64,000 nucleotides of DNA from Macrostomum lignano (GCA_002269645.1 NIVC01000858.1:124001-188000); one strand, 5' to 3'; numbered from the stretch's first letter, positions 398 to 64,000 are shown. The notes: a model not told the origin generated them from the sequence alone. Numbers and translations are program-made.

Positions 398-399
<2 letters not shown>

Positions 400-438
<39 letters not shown>
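400..438. repeat. (ATT)n microsatellite
   Basis: About 12 perfect ATT units read directly. Confidence 0.95.
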
Positions 439-1791: not shown

Positions 1792-3470
<1,679 letters not shown>

Positions 3471-7878: not shown

Positions 7879-9337
7879 AAACGACTCAGGCGCCTCGGTG
7901 GGCAGCGCAGCGCATCGGCAGACTCAGCGCAGAGAATGGAACTGTTGATTCCCTGCCACCTGCCAACGTGTTTAACAAGCACCCGTTCCGGCAGTCAGCA
8001 AATAAATGTTACAAACTGTGAAATATTGGCAAACTGCAGTCTTGTTAATAATGCAAATTAAGGCTTGAAAATGATCAGAGAGGTAAAGACCTGTAGAAAT
8101 TATACCGAAAGCAAACTTCGAAGCTATCCAGTATGTAATATACAGTACTTGTAAATAAATATGCATATGCATACTTGTAGCTCAGCTCATTAACTATACG
8201 GTCACTTATAGTGAGATCAATTAATAATGACCATTCTAATTATGTGTAAACAAATGTGTTGAAAAGCCAGTCTTGAAAAATACGAATTAACCCGAATAGG
8301 AATACAAGTACCAAATATATGGAAACTAAACTAAACCTACTTTTGTCACTTAGAGTATAGTCACAATCTTCCTCCCCAAGGATATAATATAATAATTATA
8401 TATAATTAAGGACGCTTAGCTATAGGGTTCCGCGCAAGCGCCTGCCTGCAAGTCAGCGATAGGCGATTCAGTAAGAGTGACAGTGCAGATCTGGCCGCGG
8501 CGCATGCAGTTGCTCGGTCGGCCGGTGCATCAGGGCAGGGCCAGAGGGACGGCCGCGCACCGCGGCACAGGGTCCGTAGGAAGTGCAGCCCAGCAGCATC
8601 CGACGGCCCTGGTGAAGTGTACTTCTCAGGGGCGGAGCTCCAGTGCATGTCTTCAGAGCGTTTGTCGGCAGGCGCTCCAGTTAGTACACGCTAAGCGCGT
8701 AGCGCAGCAGCGATCTCGCGTCCGCGGGCTCCGCTGCTCTCGCGTGTGTTTGTCGGCGGCCACAGCTAGCTTTCCTTCATCGTTACAGGAAGGATCGGAT
8801 CGGGTGCACCTTCAGATAGTCTCTAAAAGCTGACTTGAAGACGTTTCTGGGAAGGTGCACACCAGGCCTGGTTCTGTAGGAGACATGATGGCAATTGAGG
8901 TTGATAATTACCAGCTAAGCGCCGAGATATGGGGAGTTCTCGGTACACCACGACGCGGTCTCGCTGGGGACTTAACAACAGTTGAAATTTTTTCAAAAAG
9001 AAATTCTGGTCACTATTTTCTTCAGGAAAAAGAAAAAGCAAAAAGCATCAGCCCTGTAAGCCCACCTATCGGTACCCCGTTGAGCTTCGGTCTCCAGGCT
9101 ATTATTAAAATCTAAGTTTGCCCACTCCCAAGGTTCTAATTATCGCTCTGTCAGCTAGAGTGCTGACGACGCCGCCTAAAACTTTACTATTTTTTCGATC
9201 TCAAAATAACTTTAGATTTGTTTTTCTGAATGTCTTTCTATTTTTTAATCATAGCTTTTTCCGGGAAATACCACAGAGGTCAATTTTAGTGTGTCCCATT
9301 TCCCATCGTTTGACACAATTTGCTTTTATGTTTACCG

Positions 9338-10931
9338 CAGGAAATAAGAAGAAAGTAGACAAAATAGATTTACTTTTTTTGTTCTGTATATTTAAACTCA
9401 ACTATTTTTAGGACTACCTTTTGTATTTTCAGACTGTAGCTGTATCTCATTTGATTTATCTAATTTCTATTTTTCATTGTTGTATTGTAGTTGTAGGCAG
9501 GCAGGCCTATTCAGTCAGTGAGTTAGCACTAATAAAAATAAATAACAAAGTTTTAGTGACTTGTGGCTCCAAATAAAAACTTTCTAGCTAATTGATAAAG
9601 GTGAAGTTTAGCATAAGGATTCCACAGAGAACCATTTTAAACCATTGATAACTTTAAATAAACAATGTTATTATTGTTTTAACTTTTTATAAATTTTATG
9701 TAAATTTGCAAAGAAATTTTTATTCTTTTCAACCAAAAGTGCACCCAAGGGGGTAGTCCTTTGGCAGAGACCTAAAAATAAAAAGTAGGACCAGATGCAT
9801 TTTCCCAAAATTTCCAAAAATATATATCTTATCTAATCCCTTTTTGGTCTTTAGCCTACTTTCCAAAGCTGCCCCCTCAACAATTCTCTAATTGTACTAA
9901 TGATTTAACACAAATCCCAAATGATAAATAAATTTTGTATTTATTTATCATTTGGATAGTATTAAATATTGTTTATTAGTATTAATTATACTTTTTCTTT
10001 AGTTTTTATAAAAAAACTCTAATTTACTCTAAATTACATATAACTCTAAATTGGGATTCAGAACTTAGATCAGTAAGTAATTATTTAACTATAATAGTTA
10101 AGTATTGAAGTTAATAATAATGGATTTTATAAAATCAATATATTGGAAGTCTATATTGAAAATAATAGATTTTGCTTGAATATTCATTATACTAAAATAT
10201 AGCAAACATAGAAATTTATATAAATAATATAAGTTTTTGCTTATTATAAATTTGTACATTATTTTATTATGGTGCTCTCTATAGTAATCTTTTTTATAAG
10301 TGTAACATAATGCTATGTAGTATGTTTTATTGATTTTTTAACCATGGTAGACTATATTGCTAGTCTAATTTAGGCTCAAAAGTCATTTAAAAAGGAGTTG
10401 AAAGAAAAAAACATATAGTTAAGTTTAAGTAAGAACACTAAGAATGTAATATTAATAATTATATATAGGACCATGTCAAGAATAAAGCTTCAGATATTGG
10501 ATAAAATAATTAAAAATCTGGTTGCAAATAAACCTATATAATATTAATACCTTAAAGGAAGTGAATCTATTATATAATATATATTTATAATTTCAGTAGA
10601 TTAATTTAACAAAAAACTGAAAGACCTAAAGATCATAATTGAAATAAGGTAGATAAGAAAAAATATCATATATAGTCATTGTTAGACAAATATAGCAATA
10701 AATGGCTTCTGCAATAAAAAATAGCATTAAAGAATCAGATGAATTTATATACATGGAAAATGTGCTTGCACTCATGTTATACCCAAATAATGCCCAAACA
10801 TAATTTGGGTGTCAATATTTAAAGTTTTTGTAAAATACTACTTTCAGCTAAAATGCTATTTATCCATGTAATTGCATGGTGCCATGGCAACAAAGAAAAC
10901 AGTAGTCAGTACAAAGCCATATGCCTGCAAT
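9338..10931. other. AT-rich block without CpG, upstream of the first supported MROH1 coding exon
   Basis: No CG dinucleotide found by eye between about 9337 and 10932, although GC, CC and GG dinucleotides are present. Confidence 0.75.
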
Positions 10932-11033
10932 CGTCAGATAGATTGTGAGTTTCTGTTGCATTCCATTTAGCTTATGAAATTGCTCTGTATCTCATGAACT
11001 ACCTTGTCAAGCCCACACTGTCTCCAATTGCAG

Positions 11034-23669
<12,636 letters not shown>

Positions 23670-30635: not shown

Positions 30636-30708
30636 CGACCACGCCAGGACTCGAACCTGGAATCTTCTGATCCGTAGTCAGACGCGTTATCCATTGCGCC
30701 ACGCGGCC
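30636..30708 (-). tRNA. tRNA-Arg (anticodon ACG)
   Basis: Reverse complement GGCCGCGTGGCGCAATGGATAACGCGTCTGACTACGGATCAGAAGATTCCAGGTTCGAGTCCTGGCGTGGTCG folds as a 73-nt cloverleaf with A and B boxes; oligo-T terminator about 10 nt downstream. Confidence 0.97.
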
Positions 30709-34611: not shown

Positions 34612-34641
34612 TAGGTGGCGTGAATGAGCCTCACTTTATAA

Positions 34642-34942
34642 CAGGGGTTGGCGAAATTTTTTACCTTAAGGGGCAGATAGAGATCGTGATTGCGGGCCAT
34701 GGAGGTAGCGGAATTGGCGACCCTCGCCTCCCCGCTGTGTCTGCCGACCACCCTGCAGAAGATGGGAGAAAGGAGAGTGAATAGAGAACAGAGAAAAAGA
34801 GGAGAGAAGGGAGAGGAGAGGAGATTAGAGAGAAGAGAGATGAGAAGAGACCTAAAACCTTGAGTGGGCCGGATTGCTTTTGTGAAGATTCAAAGGACCC
34901 GAGGGCCGCGTGTCGCCCACAGGCCGGAGTGTGTCGTCCCTA
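34642..34942. mobile_element. Degenerate hAT (Charlie-like) non-autonomous element
   Basis: Starts CAGGGGTTGGCGAA; ends GAGGGCCGCGTGTCGCCCACAGGCCGGAGTGTGTCGTCCCTA; flanks CTTTATAA / CTTCATGA match 6 of 8; internal GA-rich tract. Confidence 0.5.
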
Positions 34943-35225
34943 CTTCATGACAATGTACTTTAATGTACTTTATAACCATGACATCCGCACCAACGACAGC
35001 AACAAAGGCTTTGAAACTTTTCTATATTGGAATAAACTTCGGTCAGCAAACAGCCCAGACGAATTGGGATGGAAGCTCTGGACACAATAGTGAAAATTTA
35101 GCTTTCTGCGAGCGTATCATGCATGCAGCCGCTCAAAGCTGCCATCAGTTTAAAATTCAGCCTTCAAAATATGTACAACTTTTGCTAAAGCAGAGTCCTC
35201 TTTCTTAAGTAGTCCTTGTGGCGGG

Positions 35226-35453
35226 GCAGGGTGAGATGCGGGCAGGTGAGGTAGGGTGAGATGCGGGCAGGTGGGGTAGGGTGAGATGCGGGCAGGTGAG
35301 GTAGGGTAAGATGCGGACAGATTGGGTAGGGTGAGATGCGGGCAGGTGGGGTAGGGTGAGATGCGGGCAGGTGGGGTAGGGTGAGATGCGGGCAGGTGGG
35401 TAGGGTGAGATGCGGGCAGGTGGGGTAGGGTGAGATGCTTGCAGGTGGGGTAG
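35226..35453. repeat. 25-bp G-rich minisatellite (GTGGGGTAGGGTGAGATGCGGGCAG), about 9 copies
   Basis: Direct reading. Confidence 0.93.
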
Positions 35454-37121
35454 GAGTGCTTTAAGAGGGAAGACAAGATTCGGAGAGAGGTTTGGTTAGA
35501 TGGGTGAGAGCGGGAGAGGTAGAGAAACGGGGCGGGTAGTCCTACTTAAAGTAGCATCATTTAATTAATGGGCTATTTTTGTACAACTAATACATTTCAT
35601 TAGGTAACAGCTGCTTCCCGAAAGCCGTAAAATTAACTGAGTCAATATGAATCAGCGTAGGCCATGCCGGCCCTTTGTTAGAAAGGCCTTGGTAAAAAGA
35701 AATAGGACAATTAAAATGGGTTGTTTTTAAATTAGGTGCCAAATGGGATACAAAGTTTCGAGCTCGTAATGACAAAACCCGGAACAACAGCTTTGGAAGT
35801 GTCTGTCTTGAAACAGTCTCGGAGTGCAAGGGCTATCGGTGGGTTTCAGGTTCAAAATCAGTTTTAAGATGAGTCTGAACCAACTGCGCATTGATTTGAG
35901 GAATGTGAACCGGACTTCCGGACCGCCGCCATCAAATGAAGACAATTTTGAATGATCAAAAGGCTCGTAAGCATTGCGCTATCAAACGTCGTGCGTGATT
36001 GGGTGATTAATTTAATACATTAGACATTTTCGTGGCTGTGCAATGGACTGTATTAGCACTTCAGTTCCAGGCTTCACACGCCCATCAGTCCCGCAGTGCT
36101 GTATTTGCCAACGGTGTCCCCTGGCTGTGTTCGAATCACTGACAAGGCCGATGCCAGATGACAGCGGAGCGGCTGGGCCGACTGTCCGCCTCAACTGCTT
36201 GATTGATTGGCCACCCGGGTGTTTTTCAAGCCACTCTGCGCGCGACATTCGCAAGCAGATTTACTGAAGGAAAACAAAGCAGCGCTTCCAGGCCGCCCCC
36301 CCCCCCTGTAATCGCGCCCACTTCAGCCTCTTACGGGCCAAACTTTCTCCAGCCACCAGCGGGCACAGGTGAATCTCATTTTTCTATCCAAGTCTTTCTT
36401 TCGCCCTCAATATCCCAGGCAGACCCACGCACACGCATAGCCATTGCACCCGCATAACCATGCCGCTTCTGTCCCTACCAAGCATTCTTCTTTGTTTAAA
36501 CAGACTTGGGTCTGCGGGCTGCAATCGAACCGCGCTGCAACTTCAGAATGCGTCAGGATGTGCGCTCAGTGTCCGCGGCGTCCCTGCCAATGGCCCCCTC
36601 ACTTCGAAGCCTTGGTGATGCACACACGGCACCCAGCTTCCCTCCATGCGCAACGAATCGGCGAATGCAACACCCCGAGTGCGCTGTTGGCCCATCCGTA
36701 GCTCTCCTGTGCAGGTAAATTCTTGACGCACCCGGTCTTTGCTTGCTGTTTTACAGATGGTGGGCAGAAATGACCTGGCCAGGCCGAGGAACAGCGCTGC
36801 GCAACGGTCCCGGAAGGTACGCGGCCGACTGAGGGGGAAAGAGAGCGCACGCTGCAGCAATAGAGGTGCGCCGCCATTTCGACCCGTTGGGGTTTCAAGT
36901 TTCTTATGCGAGCCCGGGAAAGGCAGGCCAGTGTACGATCGGCGGGTGTTTCATCTTCGCCCTTCAACCATCCTCTCTCCGATTTGAGGCGAGCGCCAAT
37001 GGCATCCAGCCGGTTCCATTAGATAGGCAGAAAACTGGCCTGGTCTCTCTGCATCTCAGTGTATCTTGGCAGGCGTACTGGCAGCGCAATAAATGCTCGC
37101 CCCTGAAGCCGCCTGCAGCAG

Positions 37122-39239
37122 ATGAGGCTGCAGCAGCCAACTGGAGCAGCTTCCTCAGCAGCTGCAGCTTCTCCGCGGCGTCGCCTTCTCGGCTGCCTTC
37201 CCGAATCGCTCTGCGACCTGCTGGTTTGTTGCCGGCGAAGGCAACGTCTGGGAAGTTTGGAGACCTCCTCTTCTAGCAGCGAGGTCACGTTTCTCACCGC
37301 AACCACCAGCTCGCCTCCCTTTAGCGCAACCGCCGAAAATCAGCTCGACTGGCGTCTCAGTTCGTGGAGCTCACCATGGCTGCCTAGGCTACCGGCGTCC
37401 TCCGAGACTTTCATACCCATGACGCAGAGCGGCTCCAGCATGCTCTCGCACTCGTCTTCGAGCCGCAGCAAGAAGAAATGCCGGCGGTCCCGCTGCTACA
37501 ATGGATCCAAAACTGAGGCGTCCATACCGCTGACGTTTAAAGACCCCGAGCTGCCCGATCCACAGATAGTTGAGCCTCCGGAAGCCGCTGCACAGATGGG
37601 CAACATGCCAACTCTCGCTGTAAGCAGTCACTGTCGGAAAGGCCAACTGGACCAACTGAGGGGAGATTTGGAAAGGCTGGGTCAGCAGATCGCATCTCTG
37701 GCTGTGAGAAATAGCAAAAGCACAGCGGAAAGTCCCGAGCAGAGGTCAAACAGCACTCAGCAGCCAGTGACGGTGACAAATTCCGGCGCAGAGGAACTGC
37801 TTGACCCAGAAATCCCCGGAGCAATCGGGCTTTCCAGTGATCGAGGAAATGTAGAGGCCGTATCTGCAGCCGCTGGACAGGCAGAGGAAGCCGTCGACTT
37901 TGGGTTCAGTGCGGCCTCAACGGCGCTACAATCAGGAGCTCAACAGGTGGACCTTCTACCGGACGCCACAGACAAAACGATAAAGAACGGTGAGAAGCAA
38001 GGACCAAAGACTGTCGCAGCAGCCAGTTCGGAAATCATGCAAAGTCTGCCCAAAAGTCGCGACCGGCAGAGAGCAATCGAGCCGCGCGAGGAGCCTCAAA
38101 GGCGCAGAGTCCAGAGGAAGAACAGCAAATCTCCGTACAGGGACGACTCAGATGGGCACCTGATCTATGCATTTGGAGATGTGCTGCAGGAGCGATATGA
38201 AATAACAAAGACTCTGGGCGAGGGTACGTTTGGCAAAGTTACCGAATGCATTGACCTTCAAAGCGACAGCCGGAAGCGCGTGGCCATCAAAGTTATTAAA
38301 AATGTTGAGAAGTACAGAGAGGCAGCTAAGCTGGAGATCAATGTGCTAAAGAAGCTGGATGAGAAAGACCCAGAGGGCTGGTACCTGTGCATCAAGCTGC
38401 TGCATTGGTTTGAGTACTATGGCCATATGTGCCTCGTGTTCGGTTTGCTGGGCAAGTCTGTGTACGACTTCTTGAAGGACAACGACTACGCACCCTATCC
38501 CATGGACCATGTGCGGCACATTGTGTACCAACTGGTTCACTCCGTCAGGTTTCTGCACGACAACCAGCTGACGCACACGGACCTGAAGCCAGAAAATATC
38601 TTATTCCTGAACTCCGACTACACAACATGCTACAACCCAAAGCGTCGAAAGCACGAGAAGATAGTCAACTGCACGGATGTCACGCTAATCGATTTTGGCT
38701 CGGCCACTTTTGATCACGAGCACCACTCGACCGTGGTGTCGACTCGCCACTACCGAGCGCCGGAGGTGATTCTAGAACTCGGTTGGTCGCACGCCTGCGA
38801 CGTTTGGTCGATCGGCTGCATAGCGTTCGAGCTGTACACGGGCTTCACTCTGTACCAGACGCACGAGAACCGCGAGCACCTGGCCATGATGGAGCGCATT
38901 CTCGGCCACGCGCCCTACCGCATGACCCGCCGGTCGCAGACCAGCTACTTCTGGCACGGCCGGCTTGACTGGGACTACCATAGCAACGAGGGCCGCTACG
39001 TGAGGGAGAACTGCCGGCCACTGTATCGGTACATGAAAGACGAGTCCCAGGACACCAGGGACCTGTTCGACCTCATGCTTCGCATGCTGGAGTACGAGCC
39101 CGACGAACGAATCCAACTGGAGGCGGCCCTGGATCACCAGTTCTTCCAGTCGCTGCCGCCAGCCTGCTTGCGCCACGTCGCCAAGCCGCCCGGAGGAGTC
39201 AGCGATCCCGAAGCTTCAGAGGCAGCTCCACAGACCTGA
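37122..39239 (+). CDS. CLK: CLK/Doa (LAMMER) dual-specificity kinase, single exon; start ATG 37122 or 37419
   Basis: [41 protein letters not shown] and the diagnostic [11 protein letters not shown] in one uninterrupted ORF. Confidence 0.93.
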
Positions 39240-41198
39240 TTGGCCTCTCTTTTATTTTCTGGACGGCCTGTGCACTAAGGAAGTTGTCACAGTTGAGTGT
39301 CGGCTCTAACAGCTTCCAAGCAAAGCCGCTTCATTCAAGCCACTACACAGCTGCCTCTCGCATGCATCTTACCGAAATAACGTGTTTACGGTCTGTACTG
39401 AAGCTTCTGTATTATAGATCTGATAGATGCCTGCCGCCTCATCTACCAGTGATTTTGCCATATTCTGTATAGTTGAACATGCAGGCGCATCCTTCAGCAA
39501 ACGTCTAAAAGGAAGGCTATGGAGCCATAAACAGTCCCAGATTTGCCTTGTATGCATATAGGTGGCTTATTTTTGTACGCACGAGAGAGCCTTCGGTAGA
39601 CGAAACTCTCATTTTTATCAGACTGTTGCAGTGTCGCTTTGAACTATTTAAACATGCGCACCAGATTGGATCAAATAAATGCATGAAGCCCCAGTAGATT
39701 TTCTGCTTTTGTAGTTGTGTTCTAAATCGCATACAGCAAAGCTGCAACACTCGCAAGACTCTCGCGAATCTCTTTACTCAGTTTAGCAGGGGCACCTAAG
39801 AGCGTGTAAATATAGGGTGGAACATTTTGTATTGAGTGTATGGAGATTAAATTAAACAAAATTCGGAAAAAATTCATTTCTAATGAAAATGGCAACAATA
39901 CTACTGACACAGTTGAGTTCAGTAGTCTCACCCATCACGTTCCAAGGAATTTTACAATTCCTTCTATGGCCACACAAGCCGTTCGTGAATGGCCATCCCG
40001 AATATATGACAAACTAGCGCATGTAGCCATGGAAATTGAGAAGTAAAAACAAGACTTACAGAATTCTTAATCACCAAGACCATCTTTCACAGCACAGTAC
40101 CGATCTTGTTAGAACAGGGCGGATGAACTGAAGGGCAACCAGTGAGTCCCGGACCCTGGCGTGCCTGTCGGCCATCAGATTCGTAAATGTCAAATAGTTT
40201 CAGCGCAGTTGCTATGCAGTGGTAAAATATTCCACCGCAATATCCGCCAACTTTTCTTTCCTAAAGCAGAAATTAGCGGCAGTGGACACCGGCGCAGCAC
40301 GCTGAGTTTGGGCAATCTGCATCCTCAAAATTGAAAAAGACATTACAAAAGCTGCAATTCTGCGCAGAACATTTCTTCCGCTCTCCACCAGATCTGCAGC
40401 CCAGTCTAGCTGAAGCTGAGGCTGAATCTGAAGACAGGCAGTCTTGATGCAGCACTCAGGCTTCTCTTCATCTGCGCCTGCAGCTGCGCACTTTCGTGGT
40501 GCTCCGGCAGAAAGCTGACAGAAGTTGTCTGGTGCTTATCCTGCCAGACTGTTCAGCTTGCAGTTCCCAGCGAATACGCAAGACTAAGAAAGAATTTTAA
40601 GTGGCAAGCAACAGCGTGGAGTGTAATCTTAATGCCAAACGGTAAAAACCACTGGCTGCACACAAAGTGAATTAAATGACACGGTAACTGCACAGGGCGG
40701 GAAGCTGCAGTGCTAAGATTGAATGCCACCAATAAAAGTATGCGCATTGCTGCTGGTCATTGCGAGCCAGACCAAGTGATGCGCTCACTTGCCTGGGTAC
40801 AGGGGTTCTAAATTTAATCCTATTATAATTAAGACATTCCTTATCGTTCAGCCAGCCATAGGAAGGAGAAATTTATGGCCTACAGTGCTTTTAATGACCC
40901 CCCCTCGGTGGGCCACTTTTACTCGGATTTCTGTCTCCCCCAGGGTGGACAAGTGGCGCCACTCATTCGCACCCGGCCTGGCTCAGCTGCATGGCGCCCA
41001 GAGACAGGCGAGCGTCAGGATCGGCGGCTCTCAGACCCCGCAGCCGCACACAGTAGAGGCTTTAAAAAACTTTTAGTGAGGTCGCTCAGCCTTTTAAATG
41101 CAAGCCATCGAACAATTAGGCTCTGCTTAACAAGTGTCCGAACCCCAGCCTTGTCTGCTTGCTCAGCTCTCACTTAGCCTGAATCATTCTGTCACTGC

Positions 41199-42689: not shown

Positions 42690-43115
42690 GGGGGAATTGT
42701 TGAGATATAAAGGCTTACGGGTGGGGAAATTGCTGAGATATAAAGGCTTAAGGGTGGGGGGAATTGCTGAGATATCAAGGCTTACGCCTTACGGGCGGGG
42801 GAATTGCTGATATATCAAAGCTTACGGATAGGGAGAATTGCTGAGATATCAAGGCTCACGGGTGGGGGAATTGCTGAGATGCCAAGGCTTACGGGTGGGG
42901 GGAATTGCTGAGATATCAAGGCTCACGGGTGGGGGGAATTGCTGAGATGCCAAGGCTCACGGGTGGGCGGAATTGCTGAGATGCCAAGGCTTACGGATGG
43001 GGGAATTGCTGAGATATCAAAGCTTACGGATGGGGGAATTGCTGAGATATCAAAGCTTACGGGTGGGCTTGCTGAAATGTTAAGGCTGGCGGGCGAGCTG
43101 CTGAGATGTCAAGGC
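42690..43115. repeat. About 33-35-bp minisatellite (GGGGAATTGCTGAGATATCAAGGCTTACGGGTG), about 12 copies
   Basis: Direct reading. Confidence 0.92.
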
Positions 43116-43877
43116 TAATGTCAGAAGCTATACATGTAGTTTAAAAAAATCATTACATTCTGTGCTGTCTATGGTATTGAATATTTTAGTTTGACTTTTG
43201 CTGCACGTTCACTAACTCTGTTACTTTCTAAAACAAGACAACGCATTTTCTGGCGGCTACGAGCCGGATTCAAATACACGATTGTATATGCAATTTTATA
43301 TAACAAGCCTGACCAATCTTTTCCGACTCACTACGACACAACTCATTCTTTGTTGGCTCCCCGTCGGTGGGGGGGGGGCGCTGACTGCTAGTCCTAACCT
43401 AAAACATCTCGTTAGAGAAGCGAGAACTTATTAATCTGACTGCAGCATGGCGACATGGCGAATTGATACTTTGGCTCTAGAATTTTAGTTTATGGGATGA
43501 ATCCGTGCACTCGTGTTATGGGTGTTGGTTTCACGAGACGGCCGTGTCAGAGAGAGAAAGGAAAAGAAAAACGGAGATTCCTTGCCGCAATGAATTGGTA
43601 ACTGAGAACGTGAGTTAAAATGACAAATTAATGATAAATTATAAATATAATAAATTAATAACAAGTAGTGGCATTCAGTTACAGCTACCGCATGCAGAAT
43701 TACTGAACAGCAACAACAATGTTTACCCGGAAATTGTTCAAATAAAACATCACCCACTGGACACTCGGGGCTGATTTTACACTGACCAACGCCTGACAAA
43801 TGCACAACACACACAATGAGCCTATGTACATTAAATTCAGTCTCAGGGACAGCCGAAGGAACCAATGAGCTGTCTGC

Positions 43878-46800
43878 TCACTGCTGGGCACCGCTGCCGC
43901 TGCCAGACGCAGCCTGGTCGATGATGTTCAGCAGCTTGGCCCGCTGCATCTCGCGCTGCTCGTCCTTCTCGTAAGCCGCCACCAGGGCCTGCAGTTGGCG
44001 CATCTTTTCCAGCACCTGGCTCACGGACAGGCTGCCCAGGTCGTGGATCATCTCCAGGTCGGACTTCTCCAGCTCCGCCTCGTATTTGGCAGCCAGAACT
44101 GGCAACACGATCTGCAAAGGGGAAAGCAGTGGATTGCTAGCGAACCCACAGGAATTAATGCCCTCTGCCAGCCCATGCAATCATTTCACTGCTTCGAGGC
44201 TGCAGATAGCTCATGTCCTGTAAAGTGTACTCCATTGTTTTAGCTGGTTAGTCTGCACTGCAGGGGGCTTTGGGAACTGAGCCTGAGCACACAAATGAAT
44301 GTCTAAGCAGGACAGCAGGCAGGGGTTTGACTTTCCCATTGTTAAGTATTTATGCATAGTTTAGTTAGCACAGGCCAACCACTGTGCACAAACCACAGGC
44401 CAATCATTCTTGCAGTTTCAATTGAAAATGGCCTTATACAGAACTGAACCTGGGTACTTGACATAGGAGAAACTAATTAACATACTCAAAGAGAAATACC
44501 AGAAAAATAACATACCTTAGCAGAACTAGCTAGCAAGTCATCTTTTTCTGAAACAATATAAACAATGTGAAGGTATAACCAAGTTATAAAAATGCTATAT
44601 AGGTTTCACAGATAAGACTTAAGAGAAAAGTTTTATAAAATAATATAAAATATAAAATATATAAAAAAGACAAAATCTCTCACCAGAAGTTGCTGAATGA
44701 AACTCAGTTAAGACTTCATTGGTCATTAAATCATCATCTAAAAGAAATAAAAAATTTTTAAGTTAGGATATAAAGACCAAAAAAATCTATTAATGATATA
44801 AATAATTGTAAAATCAATCCTATTTAAATCTGATTCCTTGTAAAAATTTGAATGTTCATCCTATCTAAGAATAAAAATGCTAATCCTATTTAGGCCTAAA
44901 CTCTCAGTGGCTGATTTAGAAAGGGGAGGGTAATGGCAATGAAGATGCCCATTTTTGCCCTAAAAAGGTATTTGCCCTCATAATGCTCCTCTAATTGGTT
45001 TTATTTGTCTAGTGTTACATGCTTTTATACACCAATATCATTTATATTAGCATTTTAATTATATGTTAGAATTATTCTTCCATTTATTATATTTAACTTA
45101 GAGATATTTCTTTTTATAAGTTCTTTTAAGTCTTAAATATTCTATATAAATTCATCACTTTTGTCTTATGATCCTCCTAATACAATTTTAAATGAATTCA
45201 CTACCGGTATGTGAAAGCCAGGGTTGCAAAATTTTAATATTCAAATAACTTGTGTTAAAACTGAAATTTTTTTTACTAAACTGTAGAGAACTAGTTCATT
45301 TTAACTATTTTTGTTTTATTTTTAACTTCTTGGAAAAGTTAAACCTAGTTTTTTAATTTAGTTTTCCATTTTTTTATAAAAGGCCAGCTATTCTTTCTGA
45401 TCAAAATTTAGCTACTGTAACTATGTACATAGAGACTATGCAAAATTCAAACTTAATCATTTTTGTATGCTAATTTTGTATGCTATATAAATATAGATTG
45501 ATTGTTGGGACTCAAAACTTTTGGTCCCATCTACTGGTCTCGGCAATCTCTATATGCCAAGCTATATACCAAGAGGGCATGCCAGGCCCCTTTGTATGCC
45601 AATGTGTAATCTAGGTCCTTCTGTATGCCAACAAATTCTGGCATACATGTATACCATCCAGAATCTGGTATGAAAGATCATAAGACAAAAATAAAAGCAG
45701 AGGCAGATTAAGGGGAAAGGATGGAGGGTAGTTGCTTCCCTTTTTAAAATAGCTTTAAAGAAAATTTTGTGCTCTCGAAAACCTAAATTTGCACCCTTTA
45801 ACAAAATTTCATTTTTTGCCCCCTAAATGTTTTTTTTGCATTAATAAGCTTGGTTTTTTGCCTTCAAACACCTTTTTGTGCCTTTAAGCTTGATTTTTCA
45901 ACCTTTACATATATTTTTATGCCTTTTAGCTTAAAAAAATTGGCATCCCTTAAGGTTCAACTTGTGTTGGTGCCCCAAACTTGGACTACCACCCTTCCAA
46001 AATAAACTTTAGATCTATCACTGGTAAGAAAAGTATGCTTGATCTGAATTCTATATAAAAAACTTGTTACAATTGTTAAAAACCTTGAGTATCTATTACT
46101 TTTTCATAATGTAATCCACAAGATACAAATCTGCCAAGATGAAATGATCACAAAATGAAATGTCACTTTTTTATTTTTGTTAGACCCATACATGCGCAAC
46201 TGCTGGCCGACCTGGCCGATCTGGCCACCATAAATTGTGGTGGACCAGGGGTAAGTCGCAAAAATGCCCACCCCAAAGAATAGACGTAGTACTAATTAGA
46301 TGACGAGGCATTTAGACCTTATAAGACAGTCATAATTACTCCCGCCATTTACCCACAATTGCGTTATGTTGCTCTAGAGTTTCTTCCACAGGTAAGTTGC
46401 ATTTTTGGTCAAAAAGTAAGTCGCATGGCCAGTGTAAATCAGGGGGTTGCGCATGTATGGTTAGACCTAATGTTATCCACTCCTCCCAATACAAATTAAA
46501 AAAACTTATCATTTTAAAGATAATAGACCCTATTACAAAAGTAAATTTTTAATGTAGCTTCATATTGCTTTGAACAAAGAAAATTTTGCAACACCTATGA
46601 TTAATACGTGAAAACTGACATTGCCTTCTATATTGTGAAAGGTATAGTATATGCCAGAAAATTCCAGTGTACAAATGCTTTAGCTGGTGTACATCTGGCG
46701 TACAAATGCTTTAGCTAATGTACATATGGCATATAGGGAAGAAATACAACTTTCTGTTTTTGGCAAAATCATTGGCATATAATTCTTAATTATACATATT

Positions 46801-47568
46801 CAAACTTGTTGTGCAGTGTACAAAAGCATTGAAATATGTGTCATAATTGCATAAATTATGCTAAACAATTGTTTCCTATAGTAAGGTTAATTTAAAATTT
46901 ATGACAATAAATTAGTTTTTCAAATAATATAGTTATTTTTTCTACATTTAATAATAAAAATATACATAAAATGATTATATATGTAACAATTTTGTTTCAC
47001 TAATTATTTTTATTTTTAAATGATATACATTTGTTTTTCTGAAGCAATTATTTTTCTTGCCATGTCTAATGCTTGTTACATTGATTATGTGCTTGTTAAT
47101 CACATAATTTTTAGTGGCGTACAATTTATTACAACACTTTATTGGTGTAATTTACTAGCATACACTTTACTAGATAGCCGAATACTATCTGGCGTACATG
47201 TAACACGATCTGTAATATGGGTTGCCTTGACTTTCTTAAGAGGGATTGTATAACAAAACAGTGCAATAGAAGAGATTGCATAATGAATCAATAGTAATAT
47301 ATAGCCTAAGTGCAAAGGGATCTCATAACAAAAAAATTCCACCTAACCAAAAAACAAATAAGTGATACAATAAATTCTACACTATTTCAATTGTGCTTTG
47401 ATGATATTATAGAAGTGTAACTTTGATGAATAGTAGGCCTAGTATAGTATAGTATCTAGTACTAGTAGTGATTTGATTAGTGAATAATAGTTAGTGAATA
47501 GAAGTTAGAACTTAAAACAATATTAAAATTGTAATTAAAAAGAAGAAACATTTACCCGATGCCGCCAT
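43878..47568 (-). CDS. LIN52: LIN52 (MuvB/DREAM subunit); exons 47568-47556, 44737-44684, 44547-44516, 44111-43878 (110 aa)
   Basis: The last exon ELEKSDLEMIHDLGSLSVSQVLEKMRQLQALVAAYEKDEQREMQRAKLLNII resembles recalled human LIN52 (ERDDIDMLKELGSLTTANLMEKVRGLQ...ESREMTRGKFLNIL). Three small upstream exons have clean GT-AG sites and matching phases (1,1,0). Confidence 0.8.
46187..46459. mobile_element. hAT-type MITE (273 bp)
   Basis: Perfect 14-bp TIR CATACATGCGCAAC / GTTGCGCATGTATG; perfect 8-bp TSD GTTAGACC at 46179-46186 and 46460-46467. Confidence 0.9.
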
Positions 47569-47997
47569 TAGATATGAAAAACAATTTATTTCACAAGAAG
47601 TACTGATAACAATAGTCAGAATAATAGTGTATCCTATGCCGCTCTACGTATGACTCAATAATTAAAATCCAGATTTCTGTAAAAGCCCTTTTGAAATAAA
47701 TAAAAAGTTGCAATAGTAAGTTAAAACAAAGCAAACGCTTCTGTAATCTGAAACAAAACACAATAAAAATTAAGTGCAGTTTTTTAAAAATTTAAACTTT
47801 TTTACAATGAAGTTTTTAATAATCATAATCTTCTACTACACTCTTTCTTGGAAAAACATTCCCTTTCCCTTCGATCGATCGATCTCCATCCACTTACCAA
47901 GCTGATAGGCAGCAACTGTTTTTTGACAAAGAGATTTTCAGTTTGTGTCAACCCAAGTTTTATATTAAGAAGCAGTGTTGCTTTGCGTGCTTTAATA
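47569..47997. promoter_or_regulatory. Bidirectional promoter region between LIN52 and TOMM20
   Basis: Start codons are 429 bp apart, head-to-head; CpGs retained; TCGATCGATCGAT at 47871-47883. Confidence 0.7.
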
Positions 47998-50900
47998 ATG
48001 ATTACAGGAAGACAGTATTTAGCTATTGGTGCGGGTCTTGGTGCTGCATTTCTAGGTTACTGTGTATATTTCGATCAAAAGCGTCGAAGTGCACCCGACT
48101 TTAAGCAGAAGCTAATTGAAAGTAAGCCTTTTCAATTCTCTTAATCTATGTATCTCAGTAATAATAATTATTTTTTTCATAGTCACCAATTCAAGAGATT
48201 TCTCAATAGGGCTAACCAGGGCTAATTTACTTAATATGTCAAACAAGAAGACAAGGAAGTTTGATAAAACACAGGTAGGGGGCCTACCCAGTAAAACGCG
48301 GAATCTGCAAAAATGGAATGGAATAGCATGGTAAATTGTAGAATCTGTAGCAGAATTATAAATTGTGGAATGAACTATGGATTCCAATTAATTTGAAGTA
48401 AAATGCAAAGTATGGTGAATAAAAAATTACAATTTTAAATATGTGCAGCTATGCCTAGATCAGGGGTCCTCAACCTGCAGCCTGCAGGCCAATTCTATGT
48501 GGCCTGCAACTGTCTTTCCAATTTTGCATTTGATGCAGCCCACTGAGTAAAATAGATGGAAAATTTATAGGGAAAGATGTCATTTTATATGGAAAGGTAT
48601 CATTTTTGGGAAAAGAGGTAATTTTGTAAGGAAAAGTGTCATTTTGTAGTAGACATATTATATATTGACTTTGACTTAATTTTTCTTAAGTTTTGTGCTT
48701 TTTTGCAGCTAACATATTTTAAATTAGTATTGAATGCAGCCCACTACTAATAATAAGTTAGGGTCCCCTGGCCTAGATACTCTATAGCAATGTAGCTAGT
48801 GATGGATCCAAATATTCGGATTTAAAATCCAAATCCAAAAAAGTCTGATTTTTTTAGAAATTCAAATGTTTTAGATTTAGAATTTTTTCTAAATTTCCAA
48901 ATATGCTTCTAAATAAGAAAAAATCAAAAAAACCAAAACAAATTATGCAAACATAAAAGAAATACAACTTTTGAGAAAAGAAAGTAAATTTGAAAAATGA
49001 GAAAAAAAATTGAATATAATATTGCTCATTTTTACAATTATATGTTTTTGCAGTAATGTATATTTTTAAAAAAGTATTATTAAGTAAAGTTACTTAACTT
49101 TAAATATTCCACCAACTAAGACCTAACTAAGATTGAAGTGAAGATGAGAATTATATGTACATTTAAATATAAATAAGGCAGTTGCTATTGTTACGGTGAC
49201 TGTATAAATTGCAAGATGTTATTTTTATGGTTAACACTTAAAACAAATACCATCTAAATGAAGTGACAAACTTGCTGTTCAAATACTATGATAGTTAAAT
49301 TTAAAAAATAAAGAAAAGTTTTATCAATAAATACGATAGTAACTTCTTGTGGTTCTTGTCATGGTACCTTACTTTAGGTAATTGTTAACTATTACCTTGT
49401 AATTTAATAGAAATTTCTTCTATATGACCATAAAAAATAGCCATTTTGCTTCTTACCTACAGTGACTGTAAAAATATCAGTTTAGCTATTTATAGGGTTA
49501 CATTAAGTTAAAACCATAGGCCTGCATAGTGTATTATGCATAGTGTATAACCATTTTGTTATTTAAATGGTCACCATAACAATAACAACTGCCTAAAAAT
49601 AAAGATAAAAACTGATATGCAGGCTAGTTGCAAAGTATGTCTTATTGATTATAGGCTATATTGTGGCATGAAGTATATTGCTTTTGTAGAGTTATAGAGT
49701 TATCTATACCTACAAAAATAGATCTATAAATATAAGCTCTGCTATATACCATGGCATTTGTAAATGTTTTTATAAGCATTTTGATACTTTATACACATAT
49801 ATACATGCAAGGAATACATTAAGATACACTATGAACTAAAGTAGCATATTTTTTTATAAAAACAGACAAGTAGAAATCTTCATTGAAGACACAAATTCTA
49901 TATATTTTTATTGATTTCTCCCAGTTTTCAAAAGATACACCTTGTAGTCCAGCAAACCATTAAAACTATAGATCTAATTAGACACCTTAATGTTGCAACA
50001 ATATAAATCACTTAGTCAAAAAATACCTTTATGTGATATGCCAAGACTGCCAGTTTGTTTTTTGAATCTTTTAAAAGAAGCTGAGTTTTTGTTATTGCCT
50101 ATCTGGTATATAGGTATTAAGGTATTCTGGTATTAAGGTATACATGCTTATCTGGATTAGTATATAGAAGGGCAACTGCTTATGGCTACATCAAAATATA
50201 TTGCATCAATGACCTAAGTTTAGCATTATTTGATTCTGAAGCCATTGATGTAACTTGTTAAGTAATCTATAGTATTATAGACAAATTTAGAAAATAAAAG
50301 CAGATATCAATTGCATGCAACTAAACTTATATCAACTAAATCATTGTACTTTTTAGCACTTGAAAGTACTTGATGCCCTATGGTATATTGAGCACTATTA
50401 TATATGAAATCATATTTAATCATCTAAGTAGGACTAATAGTCCAATGTTCACTTTTGCAAGCATAGCATAAATATAAAAGATTATCTCCTTTGCTTCTGA
50501 GTAGAAAAAAACATGATATCAAAAAAGAACAAAGTGCTAATGAAAACACTTGTAAAGATAAACATTCAATAATATATTGTGACTGTTTGTTCAAACTTTA
50601 ATTACTGATCACTTTTGAAGCTCATAAAAGGCTTTTTTCTCTAATGCAAAAGATTTTAAGAGCTCCACATATTGTTGTTTGGTAAACCCTTAACAAAGAG
50701 GCTATTTGGTTAAATTAGATACAACTTAATAAGCTCTTTGAATTATAATACCTGCAATGCATTTTAGTATGTATTTAACAAATGATAAGTTTAAATTGAA
50801 TGGAATGCCACTTAACTTTTGATTAAAAGATTCAAGACAATTCATTGTATGGTTTCCATAGGCACCTTTCTTATGCTAATGGTCTATTTCTTCAAGTGTT

Positions 50901-53900
50901 TTGTGCCAATTGCTGGTAAAATACATTAGCCAGCAGGACAAAGGCAGAAAATGCAGGGATGGCAAGGATAACAAAGGGCAAGCAAAGTGCAATTCCAAAT
51001 CAAACATCATATAGCCAAAATAAATCATAGTAATATTATCGGGTATTTTAGTATACATGTATAAAAAATCTAGAACAAGGTTCTAACCTTGTCTAACCTC
51101 CTTAATACTTTTATTATAGTATATAAATATTTATTGTAAATAGGAATCAAAATACATTGATTAGGTATAATTTTATTCCTTACCTCTTTAGTTTGTTAAT
51201 CTATATCCAAAATTCTAAAATATTCTAGAAATTTTTTTAGCACAAAATAAATACGTAGAAAGAAATTCATAACTGATTTAAGTTTTCATTTTCACTTTTA
51301 GCTAAATCAAACAACTCATTGAAGCTATTAAAGTATATATTAAATTTTAACCTAATAGTAATAAGCTTATTAGACTGGTTTTGGCTAACTTGCTTCAAGT
51401 TTTGTTATTATGTTACATTTTGCAACTTGTATACAATACCAATATATATTTAGTAGAGATTATATAACATCTTAAGCCTATTCCTAATGACCTAGTATTA
51501 AAGTTAAAATTAGTGATCTAAAGCTAAGGTTCCCAACCTGTGATGCCTCATTAAGTGGGATTCTGATAGTCAAAAGATCAAGCAATTGGTCAAAATAATT
51601 TTTTGCCAAAGTCAAATAAAATCAAAATAATTACTGGAACCAAGTCTAGTAGTTGCTATAGCTAACCATGGCAAAGAACCCAGTCCTAGTTGCAGAAATC
51701 CTTTACATTTGCATAACAAAAGCATATTACTGAATTGTCACTTATAGTAACCTTGCTACTACTAGTAGTGTAGGTAAATTGATATACATATTTGGTTTCA
51801 CTTTTTGTAAAAATTTGAGCTCCTTAAATAGCTTAAGATATGCTTATGAGTTTTTTCTTTGCCCTTGAAATGAATGAAAGTGCATTGAGGATCAAAGAGC
51901 AGCAGCATATGACACGCCTCATTGAACTTGGCCACGTTGCAGTATGTAGTCTGTTCGTGAAATAGTAACGCCCCATCAGCCAACAAATGCTTCAGCCACC
52001 CAGTCAGCAGTACCCAGTGCCCCAGCCACCCAGTCACAGCAGTACCCAGTGCCCCAGCCACCCAGTCACAGCAGTACCCAGTGCCCCAGCCACCCAGTTA
52101 CGGCAGTACCCAATCAGAGCAGTACCCAGTGCCCCAGCCATCTAGTCACAGTAGTACCCAGTGCCCCAGCCACCCAATCACAGCCGTACCCAGTGCCCCA
52201 GCCACCCAGTCACGGCAGTACCCAGTGCCCCAGCCACCCAGTCACGGCAGTACCCAGTGCCCCAGCCACCCAGTCACAGCAGTACCCAGTGCCCCAACCA
52301 CCCAGTCACGGCAGTACCCAGTGCCCCAGCCACCCAGTCACAGCAGTACCCAGTGCCCCAGCCACCCAGTCACAGCAGTACCCAATGCCCCAGCCACCCA
52401 GTCACGGCAGTACCTAGTGCCCCAGTCACTCAGTCACGGCAGTACCCAGTCACAGCATACCCAGTGCCACCCAGTACTCAATAGCTCAGCATTGGGTGGA
52501 TGTGCTCAGCTGACAGTGCCAAGAAGCTAAAGAATGCCGATTTTCTACACTAGCTGACATGCCTCCAGTCTGCATGAATCTGCCTTGCATTCAGTCCTCT
52601 GCAGCTGCAACAGAGAATACAGACCAGTCCCCTCCCAGTCGGAGATGCCAGTGCATGAATTTCCTGAGTTGCCATTTCGCAAACTGGGCACGCAAGTAGG
52701 GGTGGCAGCCTCTTTCAGCGCTGTCATCAGACCATAGAAAGCATTTTTTACAAAAAAGATAAAAAGCATTCGCCAGATAAAATTGCTTCTAGAATTCAGT
52801 GTGACATGAGGCGATAAAACCCAAGCCAATTGTTTGCATTCTGTTTGAGCAAGCAATCTCCTATTTTGAATGGGAATCCATTATCGGCTGCTGGTGCTGG
52901 TTAGCCGGGCGGGATAATCAAGCCGCATGGAGTGCCTGCTTCAGTGCAGCCTGATTTGTTGGGATTTAATCAGGCACTTAATGCAGATTCCCAGTTGAGT
53001 AGGAGGCGGGAATAATGGCATTTGTTATGCCATTGATTAAAATCATATCGCCGCGTTTGATTTTTTACTGTTTATTCTCGAGATACCAATCTGAACTTGA
53101 ACTGAAAATGGGAGCTTGAAGTGGCTTGTTTTTGTCTGTCTTGGATATTTCGAGGCCTCAATATTTCGATGCACTGGCAGCTCTTCTATTCAGCTATTGA
53201 GCATATTCAATTTGGGTTGCTACGTCAGCTTAGACTTAAAGCTTAAAGTTGCCATCTCTTTAGTGTATTTTTTGTTACCGGCTGAGTTTGTCTATGGCAA
53301 AAGCGTTTTTAGCGCTATGCGAAAAAGCTAATCTTTGCGAAACCCGTTTAGAAAACACAAATAACTTGGAAAAACTTGTGAACTAAACTTGGACAAAACT
53401 TGTCTGCGTTCACGCGCTTGTATGAGCCCAGAAGTCAGTGGGATGGACAGAGTTGCATCAGTGCTGGTTGTGGGAAGCTGTCGAAGTGCTCCTGGAAAAT
53501 ATATTGTTACTTCTCGCATTGTTTTCAGTTTAGGACTGCGGTGCACTGAATTCTCATATTTCTAATTCATTTTGCCCCAACTACCGGCCTATAGTAAGAT
53601 TCGGATGGTTTGCGGATGTAAGTCCCTTCTACTATGAGACAGATAGCAATGAAGATGTTATAAAAAATTCCCGCTAAATTTGCCATCCCAGCAGCAGCAG
53701 CAGCAGAATTCCGTGTGCAAAATTTGCATCCATCAAAGACCCACTGGCTTCTGTTGGCTCATTTCGGTGCAACAATTGCAATAATCTGCCTGTGCAGCAC
53801 AAAGCTACCATAAGGGAATGATGAAGCTTTCAGTTTTCAGGTGCTTGAGCTGCCCAGCCTCTCTGCCCATAGCCTGCCGCTTTGGTCTAATTATGCTGGT

Positions 53901-55499
53901 TTAATTAAATTGATGATGCCCAGATCAGGGCCAACTAGTTCAGGGATGAAGCCGTGAGCAGTCCTTCAGTTAATTATAACCACCCGCTGGCCAGTTGTGT
54001 CAACCCTAATGCTGTTCCACACTGGAGAGGATACCCACTACAGTTAATCTGCTGCGCTTCGTATCACCCGGCTAGGCTAAATAAGCCAGGATGTTAGTTA
54101 AAAAAATTGTTGGAATATACTCTAGTACAGTGTTTAACCAGGAACAATATTTATACTTTCTAGTTTGACCTGTATATATTTATCTATTTTTAATGATATG
54201 CAAAGTGTGGTTGCTTAAATAACAAAAAAGATCTCTTTCTTTTGTGATCCTTGAGAGCCCACCGTTGTTTGTTCCTTCTTAAACAGACTGCTTAAACAGG
54301 GAGTTGCTAAGATGCAACTTCCATTCTAGAGGCTTAAGTTGATTCCATTCTTGGCTTATGCATTGCAACAGACTTCTGATTCGGGAGGTTAAAGCAAATG
54401 ACAACTCGTGCTAAAAAAATGCATCTGCGAGATGGGTTTATTGTTATCGCCATTTTTCACCTTGAGGGACCATGACCGTCCTTATTCTGTAAAAAACATC
54501 TAACGGTGCTTTTATGACATTAAAAGCTAAGGGATGATGGTGACTTCTTGGCGGGTGCTTCAGGTTATTTTGTTGCTTTTTGAGGCGCTCTTCAAGCCGC
54601 AAGAATTGCTGTTAGGACAAATCTTGTCTGAGGCGGTGATTTAACACTCGAAAGCTCTCTTGAGGAATGCGCTGCACTTGCAGGGTTGCTTGCTTGAATG
54701 CAAATCTCACAGTTCAATTGGGACAATTAGGACCGACAGTGACTACCGAATCAGTCCCTCCGATGATTGCGGCTTTCCCTTAGTGAATCACAGCTAGATA
54801 TGTTCGACCAATGACTAATCCGTTGGAGTTAAAATCGGATTAGCATTTATTAATCCAAGTGGTCGATTGTAGTTTTGAAAATCTGTACGCGAGTGCCAAT
54901 CTACACTGTAGCTGTCAGACTTAAGAGAGTCGGATTGAAGCTTTGAAGGCCATGTAAATAAAAATTGAGCTTCGACGCATTTTTATTAAAGTTCAAAATG
55001 CAATTCAGACCGGACATTTTTATCGAATTCCGCAGAGCGCCGTCAGCAGAAGGAGGACCGCCGCCTGAAGGCCGAAGGCGGCCTGCCCGACCTGCGCGAC
55101 GCCGAGGCAGTGCAGCGCTTCTTCATGGAGGAGGTCCAGACTGGCGAGAGCCTGCTCGGCCGCGGCGACATCGAAGGCGGCGTTGAGCACCTGGCCACCG
55201 CCATTGCCGTGTGCGCCCAGCCCAGCCACCTGCTGCAGATGCTGCAGCAAACCCTGCCCAACGAGATCTTTGAGCTCATCCTGGCCGCCCTGCCCAAGGC
55301 CAAGCAGAAGTTCAGCAAGGCTCGCGAGGCCCTCATCAGGGAGATGAGCGGCGGCACCTTCACCGTGCCCACGGAGGAGAAGGTGAGGGGCGTTGGGTCA
55401 GCTTGCAGCCTAGCAGTGCAGCTAACCGCTTGTAATCTTTGCTTTTAACCATTTTTTCAACAGAGAGTCGTCGAGATCCAGGAGGATGACGTCGAATAG
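47998..55499 (+). CDS. TOMM20: Mitochondrial import receptor TOM20; exons 47998-48121, 55036-55382, 55464-55499
   Basis: AFLGYCVYFDQKRRSAPDFK, LPDLRDAEAVQRFFMEEVQ, AIAVCAQP..LLQMLQQTLP and terminal EDDVE; 6.9-kb phase-1 first intron. Confidence 0.95.
48461..48770. mobile_element. hAT (Charlie-like) MITE (310 bp) with no CpG
   Basis: TIR CAGGGGTCCTCAAC / GTTAGGGTCCCCTG; perfect 8-bp TSD GCCTAGAT at 48453-48460 and 48771-48778. Confidence 0.85.
51992..52470. repeat. 32-bp minisatellite (CAGTACCCAGTGCCCCAGCCACCCAGTCACAG), about 14 copies
   Basis: Direct reading; lies in TOMM20 intron 1. Confidence 0.94.
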
Positions 55500-63347: not shown

Positions 63348-64000
63348 ATGGGCAAGCACAGAACTGACTCCCAGCAGCAGCAGGACGCTTCGCCTGACAG
63401 AGCCGCATCCAGTCGCAGCAGCAAGCGAAAGAAAGACAAGTCCAAAAAGAAGGAGAAGAAGTCCAAGAGCTCCAAGCGCGAGGGCCGGCGGGGCCGCAGC
63501 CCCTCCGAACGGAAGCGGCGCCACCGCCGTTCGTCCTCGAAGTCGGCATCCCCGGCGCCAGATTCGCTGAAGCGGCAGCAACGCAAGCGCGCCCGCAGCA
63601 GCAGCGACAGCCCCCTCGGCCAGCGTCACCGGGAAGGAAACTCGCGCGACCGGCCGCGGCCCGCCATGCCCAGCACCGGCCGCGGGAGCGGGCCCGATCG
63701 CCCAGCCTCGCCTCCCAGATCCCCCTGCCAGCTGGGCCGCCGCCCGCCCAGCAGCCGTCAACTGCTCAGGCGCCACCGCCGCCAACACCGCCACCGCCAC
63801 CGCCTCCCCCACCAGCGACATCGGCGTCCGTGACGGCAGCGGCGAGTCCCTTCGGTGCGCCTGCGCCTCAGCAATTTCAGCTGAATCCGTCGGCCGCTGA
63901 CTTTGTTCCGCAGCTTGCCGCCTTCAACAGCCCGCCGCCTCAGCAGGCCTTCCTGTCGCCACCTCCCGCCCGCTTCTGCGCTCCGGCTCTGTCAACGCCG
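63348..64000 (+). CDS. 5' part of an RS/Lys-rich and Pro-rich protein with a PAM2 motif; contains an apparent frame switch and runs off the window
   Basis: Frame from ATG 63348 gives KRKKDKSKKKEKKSKSSKR...RSPS and stops at 63833. The -1 frame is open from 63398 to the window end and gives poly-Pro and FQLNPSAADFVP (63875-63910). Confidence 0.55.

Follow-up and report, generated by a model that had tools for sequence, protein, structure and literature searches.

In the free-living flatworm Macrostomum lignano, the genes LIN52 (minus strand) and TOMM20 (plus strand) are arranged head-to-head with a 429-bp spacer, and CpG dinucleotides have almost disappeared from 3.4 kb of DNA on the LIN52 side and from 3.6 kb on the TOMM20 side of their shared promoter, the depletion ending before the 3′ exons of both genes. 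We describe these two shoulders, and the CpG-retaining island that separates them, within a window of 64 kb (NIVC01000858.1:124001-188000 of assembly GCA_002269645.1; "the window" always refers to this whole stretch). Positions 33878-57568 of the window are 100% identical to locus L002 of this contig. Our results point, with moderate confidence, to CpG methylation that has acted in the germline over a long time on the 5′ parts of the gene bodies beside the promoter; reduced recombination or a lack of GC-biased gene conversion has probably added the AT-richness.

CpG depletion flanking the LIN52/TOMM20 promoter

Across the whole window, the ratio of observed to expected CpG (o/e) is 0.76. The first-pass annotation of this DNA had described CpG as nearly absent for about 3 kb into LIN52 and about 3.6 kb into TOMM20, and our recount bears this out with o/e values of 0.13 and 0.07. 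The LIN52 shoulder, after subtraction of a 288-bp transposable element discussed below, presented 9 CpG where 67.9 are expected (GC content 0.30; Poisson P = 3e-19), and the TOMM20 shoulder presented 5 where 73.3 are expected (GC content 0.28; P = 3e-25). Over positions 44196-46194 on the LIN52 side, only 3 CpG were found versus 46 expected (o/e 0.06). The shared promoter was likewise correctly described as keeping its CpG: the island between the shoulders contains 15 of them (o/e 0.71) at a GC content of 0.34. The coordinates of all features are listed in Table 1.

The LIN52 model comprises four exons whose translation is exactly the annotated 110-aa protein P0121, and the NCBI gene call at this locus carries the Pfam family LIN52. 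The TOMM20 model comprises three exons encoding 168 aa and matches TOMM20 of other animals from end to end; the M. lignano proteins P0001 and P0002 cover 93% and 75% of this model, respectively, and both are 100% identical to it where they cover it. Public databases appear to misannotate TOMM20: exon 1 is missing from the NCBI models (126 and 123 aa), and the UniRef model P0001 (276 aa) is devoid of the last coding exon and runs on into unrelated C2H2 zinc-finger-like sequence. Transcription starts were placed from the coding models only.

Introns make up more than 95% of the depleted DNA and are as depleted as exons 2 and 3 of LIN52. Intron 1 of TOMM20 is a single intron of 6.9 kb, whose first 3.6 kb form the shoulder; these are followed by a CpG-free minisatellite (51993-52453), the low CpG content of which comes from its repeat unit, and then by normal intron sequence with an o/e of 0.6-0.9. 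The coding sequence follows the same partition. LIN52 had been proposed to span two mutational regimes in spite of its short length, and its exon counts agree with this proposal (Table 1). In both LIN52 and TOMM20, the GC content at third codon positions (GC3) tracks the GC content of the flanking non-coding DNA, with values of 0.22-0.27 within the shoulders versus 0.86-0.91 outside. GC content per kb ranges from 0.24 to 0.72 across the window.

We compared the depleted domains to the remainder of the sequence using 250-bp windows binned by GC content, from which satellites were excluded. The o/e of the domains was 0.04-0.15 in every GC bin versus 0.74-0.88 elsewhere. The depletion therefore survives the correction for GC content, and AT-richness is not its cause. 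Indeed, positions 44251-44500 at the edge of the LIN52 shoulder present a GC content of 0.44 and yet no CpG, and AT-rich unique DNA elsewhere retains CpG, such as window positions 1-1000 (GC 0.37, o/e 1.05) and positions 2501-3000 of a further locus, L004 (GC 0.33, o/e 1.14). When all 16 dinucleotides were computed, CpG was the sole strongly depleted one.

The shape of the domains raises the possibility of another mutational process tied to transcription initiation or to the 5′ ends of genes, for instance single-stranded deamination in R-loops or paused bubbles. The domains are indeed promoter-proximal and run along the direction of transcription on both sides. Such a process would, however, be strand-asymmetric and would not be specific to CpG. 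We looked for strand asymmetry in the shoulders through GC and AT skew and found none: GC skew is -0.06 and +0.04 and AT skew is at most 0.03, all within noise. Non-CpG dinucleotides containing C are also undepleted, with CC and GC being over-represented. We consider this process to be quite unlikely.

Diverged copies of the locus and inserted elements

The same assembly contains two paralogous loci, L001 (NIVC01000020.1) and L003 (NIVC01003020.1). A fourth copy of the locus was sought using the single-exon kinase, which returned only the contigs of L001 and L003. Both copies repeat the layout, with an o/e of 0.04-0.16 in the shoulders and 0.73-0.75 in the centre. L001 and L003 are 94-100% identical to one another throughout, and they are 96-100% identical to the window in its flanks. 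The picture differs over a block at approximately 43.1-52.75 kb of the window, where identity to L001 and L003 drops to 90-93% at the shoulder edge. It ranges from 67 to 87% on the LIN52 side, which remains collinear, and from 72 to 92% at the promoter, and it is no better than random (40-50%) over positions 45000-45750 and 48250-51500. This block, 13-33% divergent or unalignable between copies versus 0-3% for the flanks, coincides with the shoulders.

These alignments show two deeply diverged versions of the block with nearly identical flanks: version A, represented by the window, and version B, represented by L001 and L003. The block spans approximately 43132-52750 of the window, 1-7900 of L001 and 3000-11500 of L003, and a minisatellite lies at each of its edges (42690-43116 and 51993-52453). 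L003 combines window-like flanks with a B-type block. The window and L003 present zero differences over positions 34612-41111 and are 98-100% identical at 52750-54500, where L001 is 1-3% divergent. Since A and B are both AT-rich and CpG-free although their interiors cannot be aligned, this state belongs to the promoter-adjacent position rather than to a particular sequence, and it has persisted over the long divergence of A and B. The island contains 16 CpG in the window copy and 21 in version B, and 12 of these are common to both. This is the same rate of conservation as for other dinucleotides, and the island CpGs are therefore not hypermutable.

That composition has been kept in both haplotypes while sequence has not could also reflect selection, if housekeeping promoters required AT-rich, CpG-free DNA for nucleosome positioning, intron-mediated enhancement or the avoidance of CpG-binding proteins. 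Yet the sequence turns over freely and tolerates the insertion of CpG-rich elements, the synonymous sites of LIN52 exons 2 and 3 follow the regime of the introns, and selection would have to act implausibly on thousands of individually neutral intronic sites. We regard selection as very unlikely.

Alternatively, the shoulders could be compositionally foreign inserts, such as old transposons, a nuclear mitochondrial copy or a satellite, that were poor in CpG when they arrived. Shoulder interiors do differ between haplotypes, and the other long CpG-free gaps of the window (4083-4743, 19525-20471 and 21094-21852) are minisatellites with a CpG-less unit, unrelated to the shoulders; the CpG-free gaps of L004 are likewise minisatellites or microsatellites. 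Our searches of the shoulders were negative throughout: Tandem Repeats Finder (TRF) reported no significant tandem repeat, no similarity to the rest of the 64 kb was found, Rfam gave no match, no long reading frame was present under the standard code (stop-free stretches being short), and the long stop-free stretches found under the flatworm mitochondrial code had no Pfam match. We therefore rejected an origin of the shoulders from a transposon, a satellite, a mitochondrial insert or a non-coding RNA. Moreover, the haplotypes align collinearly along the LIN52 side (67-87% identity), which marks this side as old resident sequence, and the depletion also covers coding exons 2 and 3 of LIN52. A foreign origin thus appears extremely improbable.

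A patch of CpG at 46195-46450, inside the LIN52 side, does not belong to the promoter and proved to be a miniature inverted-repeat transposable element (MITE) inserted with an 8-bp target-site duplication. The element contains 10 CpG (o/e 0.65) and is absent from both L001 and L003. A second MITE of 273 bp, found only in L003 (positions 5687-5959) and also inside a shoulder, contains 30 CpG (o/e 1.43); its absence from L001 indicates that the family was recently active. Further copies were found at window positions 18376-18440 and at L004 positions 18908-18982. All have a conserved core of about 100 bp in common (GTACTAATTAGATGACGAGGCATTT...), and their arms differ. Comparison of MITE copies for CpG-to-TpG changes was dropped, since only this core is common and the copies belong to different subfamilies.

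CpG in the shoulders is found mainly in lineage-specific sequence. Values of o/e are 1.43 and 0.65 for the two MITEs and 0.57 for a segment present only in B (L001 1332-1862), versus 0.04-0.13 for shared sequence; among these lineage-specific segments, the two MITEs are the only ones shown to be insertions. This gradient from lineage-specific to shared sequence, although seen in very few elements, would fit an ongoing loss of CpG after arrival. Two further segments that are present or absent between L001 and L003 (458 bp, o/e 0.42; 266 bp, o/e 0.18) give no polarity and were left unused.

The coincidence of the shoulders with the diverged block is also what would be expected of a cold spot of recombination or gene conversion without any targeted methylation, in which AT-biased drift would combine with a mild CpG hypermutability that acts genome-wide and is masked elsewhere by conversion. 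GC content, GC3 and the identity between paralogues all shift at the same shoulder edges, divergence is 0-3% in the flanks and alignment fails in the shoulders, and the GC content of the flanks presents a weak negative correlation with divergence (Spearman -0.33, P = 0.046). By itself, however, a cold spot fails to account for the CpG deficit, given the GC-matched controls and the island. Outside the domains, o/e remains at 0.74-0.88 in every GC bin, including those with GC below 0.35; CpGs are both retained and conserved in the island between the shoulders, which is AT-rich as well; and positions 44251-44500 at the LIN52 shoulder edge lack CpG at a GC content of 0.44. To our knowledge, no unmethylated animal genome presents a CpG o/e of 0.07. 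We consider a cold spot without methylation to be unlikely.

Germline methylation as the favoured explanation

A second domain in the window presents the same composition. A stretch at 9338-10931 had been proposed as a further instance of the signal, and it holds no CpG at all in 1595 bp (9337-10931). A CpG-rich block at 8401-9336 (o/e 0.8-1.06) precedes this domain, which is followed by the first coding exon of an MROH1-like gene; downstream exons of this gene match the Pfam families HEAT_Maestro_2, HEAT_MROH2B_1st and HEAT_MROH2B_C. The arrangement over 8401-10931 looks like a promoter island followed by an intron of the 5′ untranslated region or an outron. Within the first coding exon, the first 17 codons have a GC3 of 0.53 and the remaining ones of 0.76, and the first CpG occurs at position 11046. 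This composition changes inside the exon, and the compositional boundary is therefore not at an exon-intron boundary. Among about ten inspected genes, LIN52, TOMM20 and the MROH1-like gene may represent a class of broadly expressed housekeeping genes.

Three reviews state that M. lignano retains DNA methyltransferases (DNMTs), two of them naming DNMT1 and DNMT3, and the statements of all three trace to one primary paper (Wasik et al. 2015). Most of the flatworms that have been studied, namely planarians and parasitic species, have lost both DNMT1 and DNMT3. M. lignano is also reviewed as keeping ALKB2, which according to one review co-occurs with DNMT1 and DNMT3, and as having a low level of 5-methylcytosine in adults. 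A low global level would be expected if the DNA that is targeted had few CpGs left. One review describes the methylation patterns of flatworms as unknown.

A near-total loss of CpG is the customary trace left by DNA methylation in the germline. Under the methylation explanation, DNMT1 and DNMT3 would maintain CpG methylation in germ cells at certain broadly expressed genes, beside a promoter island that itself stays unmethylated. Methylation would begin just outside the island and extend about 3.5 kb into each transcription unit, leaving the 3′ exons unmethylated, and deamination of 5-methylcytosine would have removed nearly every CpG from introns and small coding exons alike. The stretch at 9337-10931 would be germline-methylated DNA of the same kind. 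The shoulders would be largely exempt from recombination or gene conversion and would thereby escape the GC-biased form of conversion by which the remainder of this genome is kept rich in GC and GC3. We infer methylation as the cause, its action in the germline and the link with recombination alike.

The first-pass annotation had also interpreted the signal as a methylation or other mutational domain restricted to the 5′ part of genes. This interpretation is partly supported, in that the depletion is specific to CpG, placed at 5′ ends and found again in the paralogous copies of a species for which DNMTs are reported. It is not a full account of the composition, since CpG decay alone is insufficient to explain GC and GC3.

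Several of our results weigh against methylation as the explanation. The excess of CpG-to-TpG products that had been expected is weak: TG is at 1.19-1.23 and CA at 1.05-1.13 in the shoulders, overlapping the values of AT-rich controls (0.98-1.24 and 1.07-1.18), although continued AT-biased decay may have wiped out such an excess. By our estimate, CpG loss alone lowers GC content by a few points only and thus explains just part of the AT-richness. The feature was seen at only two independent promoters, involving three of about ten genes in the window, and no such domain was found at the seven others (beta-tubulin, biotin-dependent carboxylase, kinase and others; Table 1). The domain at 9337-10931 could lie upstream of the transcription start of the MROH1-like gene instead of downstream. 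Finally, CpG sites differ between L001 and L003 more often in the shoulders (16/58) than elsewhere (13/193; Fisher P = 6e-5), but loss and gain are inseparable in this comparison. We rejected this turnover as independent evidence because gains from the abundant TpG and CpA inflate it.

A GC content of 0.25-0.31 and a jump of GC3 from 0.27 to 0.9 go beyond what CpG decay produces, and a second process is therefore needed. This second process is probably reduced recombination, or an absence of GC-biased gene conversion, in the shoulders, as suggested by the comparison of the paralogous copies, in which the exchange that holds the flanks almost identical seems to bypass the shoulders. Our literature search found no work addressing gene conversion or GC3 for this species. 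It is conceivable, though we hold this only tentatively and think it rather unlikely, that methylated shoulders are refractory to recombination and conversion at the kb scale, which would account both for the switch in GC3 and for the preservation of ancient A and B haplotypes with breakpoints at the flanking minisatellites. Methylation may exclude exchange, or non-homology itself may now prevent it. The coincidence of the hyperdivergent haplotype block with the GC3 switch inside genes suggests a link between methylation, recombination and composition. If the shoulders are indeed refractory, methylation would shape the landscapes of base composition and homogenisation in this recently polyploid flatworm genome.

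The window contains several other features. Dense arrays of minisatellites and microsatellites occur at 4083-4743, 7408-7945, 19486-20481, 20484-22100, 28873-29462, 42690-43116 and 51993-52453, with several more in L004. As several of the array units are CpG-free, they produce spuriously low o/e values in 1-kb windows (e.g., at 4-5, 7-8 and 21-22 kb), and satellite arrays need to be masked in any genome-wide scan of CpG. A Tc1/mariner element of 1657 bp (32955-34611) carries an apparently intact transposase frame (HTH_Tnp_Tc3_2 and DDE_3); its absence from the near-identical NIVC01003020.1 indicates an insertion polymorphism. A copy that is 96% identical lies in an importin intron (L004) and was the one M. 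lignano copy returned by a search with the transposase protein (P0123), the next-best relatives being fish elements with 44-66% identity. An AlkB-like gene (Pfam 2OG-FeII_Oxy_2, 489 aa) lies at approximately 63350-64000, runs past the window end and is found at 18352-20389 of L001. Finally, a tRNA-Arg(ACG) gene on the minus strand (30635-30708) lies in an AT-rich stretch of normal CpG content.

Table 1. Features of the window, with positions counted from its first nucleotide.
Feature	Position	Strand	Description
LIN52-side CpG-depleted shoulder	44196..47556	-	Intron 1, exons 2-3, intron 2 and most of intron 3
CpG-retaining promoter island	47557..48299		743 bp; LIN52 exon 1, 429-bp spacer, TOMM20 exon 1 and first ~180 bp of TOMM20 intron 1
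TOMM20-side CpG-depleted shoulder	48300..51914	+	First 3.6 kb of intron 1
LIN52 exon 1	47556..47568	-	ATG at 47568
LIN52 exon 2	44684..44737	-	In shoulder; GC3 0.22, 0 CpG
LIN52 exon 3	44516..44547	-	In shoulder; GC3 0.27, 0 CpG
LIN52 exon 4	43878..44111	-	Beyond shoulder; GC3 0.86, 17 CpG
TOMM20 exon 1	47998..48121	+	GC3 0.27, 5 CpG
TOMM20 exon 2	55036..55382	+	Beyond shoulder; GC3 0.91, 31 CpG
TOMM20 exon 3	55464..55499	+	Stop codon included
MITE inside LIN52 shoulder	46181..46468		288 bp; terminal inverted repeat CCATACATGCGCAAC, perfect 8-bp target-site duplication GTTAGACC
34-bp-unit minisatellite	42690..43116		Detected by TRF; other edge of hyperdivergent block, where identity to L003 falls
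32-bp-unit minisatellite	51993..52453		13.9 copies (TRF); distal edge of TOMM20 shoulder and of hyperdivergent block
Second CpG-free AT-rich domain	9337..10931	+	1595 bp; 0 CpG vs 25 expected, GC 0.25
MROH1-like gene, first coding exon	10994..11179	+	ATG at 10994; open reading frame ends at GT donor
Genes without such a domain			beta-tubulin, biotin-dependent carboxylase, kinase, AIF-1-like EF-hand, zinc-finger, CLCC1-like, AlkB-like

Comparison with known methylation systems

The canonical pattern of gene-body methylation in annelids, molluscs and Ciona resembles our locus in that CpG is lost within the transcription unit and the promoter retains it. TOMM20 of the annelid Owenia fusiformis, a species with published methylomes, presents a CpG o/e of 0-0.24 over the gene downstream of about +1 kb and of 1.1-1.25 immediately past its 3′ end. 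Since Owenia TOMM20 is equally depleted, a depletion as deep as that of M. lignano is not exceptional among methylated genes of invertebrates. The extent is not the same: depletion reaches the 3′ end of the gene in Owenia but covers only about 3.5 kb in M. lignano, where few sequences of the window are richer in CpG than the last exons. LIN52 and TOMM20 thus share the promoter sparing of the canonical whole-gene-body pattern but not its extension to the 3′ end.

In holometabolous insects such as the honey bee, Nasonia and ants, gene-body methylation is biased toward the 5′ end, spares the promoter, sets in shortly past the transcription start, fades within a few kb and is enriched in exons. 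The methylation of insects targets housekeeping genes at low global levels (PMC7343188, PMC9246332) and has been linked to promoter-proximal nucleosomes (PMC7343188). M. lignano is similar in its low global 5-methylcytosine, the apparent targeting of a broadly expressed subset of genes, the spared promoter and the CpG-rich 3′ parts of genes, and the restriction to the first few kb is found at both LIN52 and TOMM20. In contrast, there is no enrichment in exons: insect methylation is exon-enriched and lowers o/e only moderately, as in TOMM20 of the sawfly Neodiprion pinetum (0.6-0.8 in the gene versus a background of about 1.1), whereas the introns of M. lignano are stripped like exons (0.07-0.13).

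The bidirectional housekeeping promoter of LIN52 and TOMM20, with its unmethylated-looking island and CpG-poor flanks, also recalls the CpG islands of vertebrates. The M. lignano background is, however, CpG-rich (o/e of about 0.8), so that the depleted part is the exception, and the island, with a GC content of 0.34, falls short of the usual GC criterion.

Finally, the heterogeneity of GC content in the honey bee is driven by recombination and GC-biased gene conversion, and its methylated genes lie in AT-rich DNA of low recombination. Our locus is similar in its extreme range of GC content at the kb scale and in the coincidence of AT-richness with the inferred methylated state, but differs in that the switch occurs inside single short genes and is accompanied by a hyperdivergent block between paralogous copies. 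Together, these comparisons place the locus, as a flatworm case, among methylation-type footprints of CpG depletion with a 5′-restricted layout. The locus predicts that methylation in M. lignano is confined to a few kb on either side of promoter islands, at a subset of broadly expressed genes, a layout that would be nearer to that of holometabolous insects than to that of annelids or molluscs.

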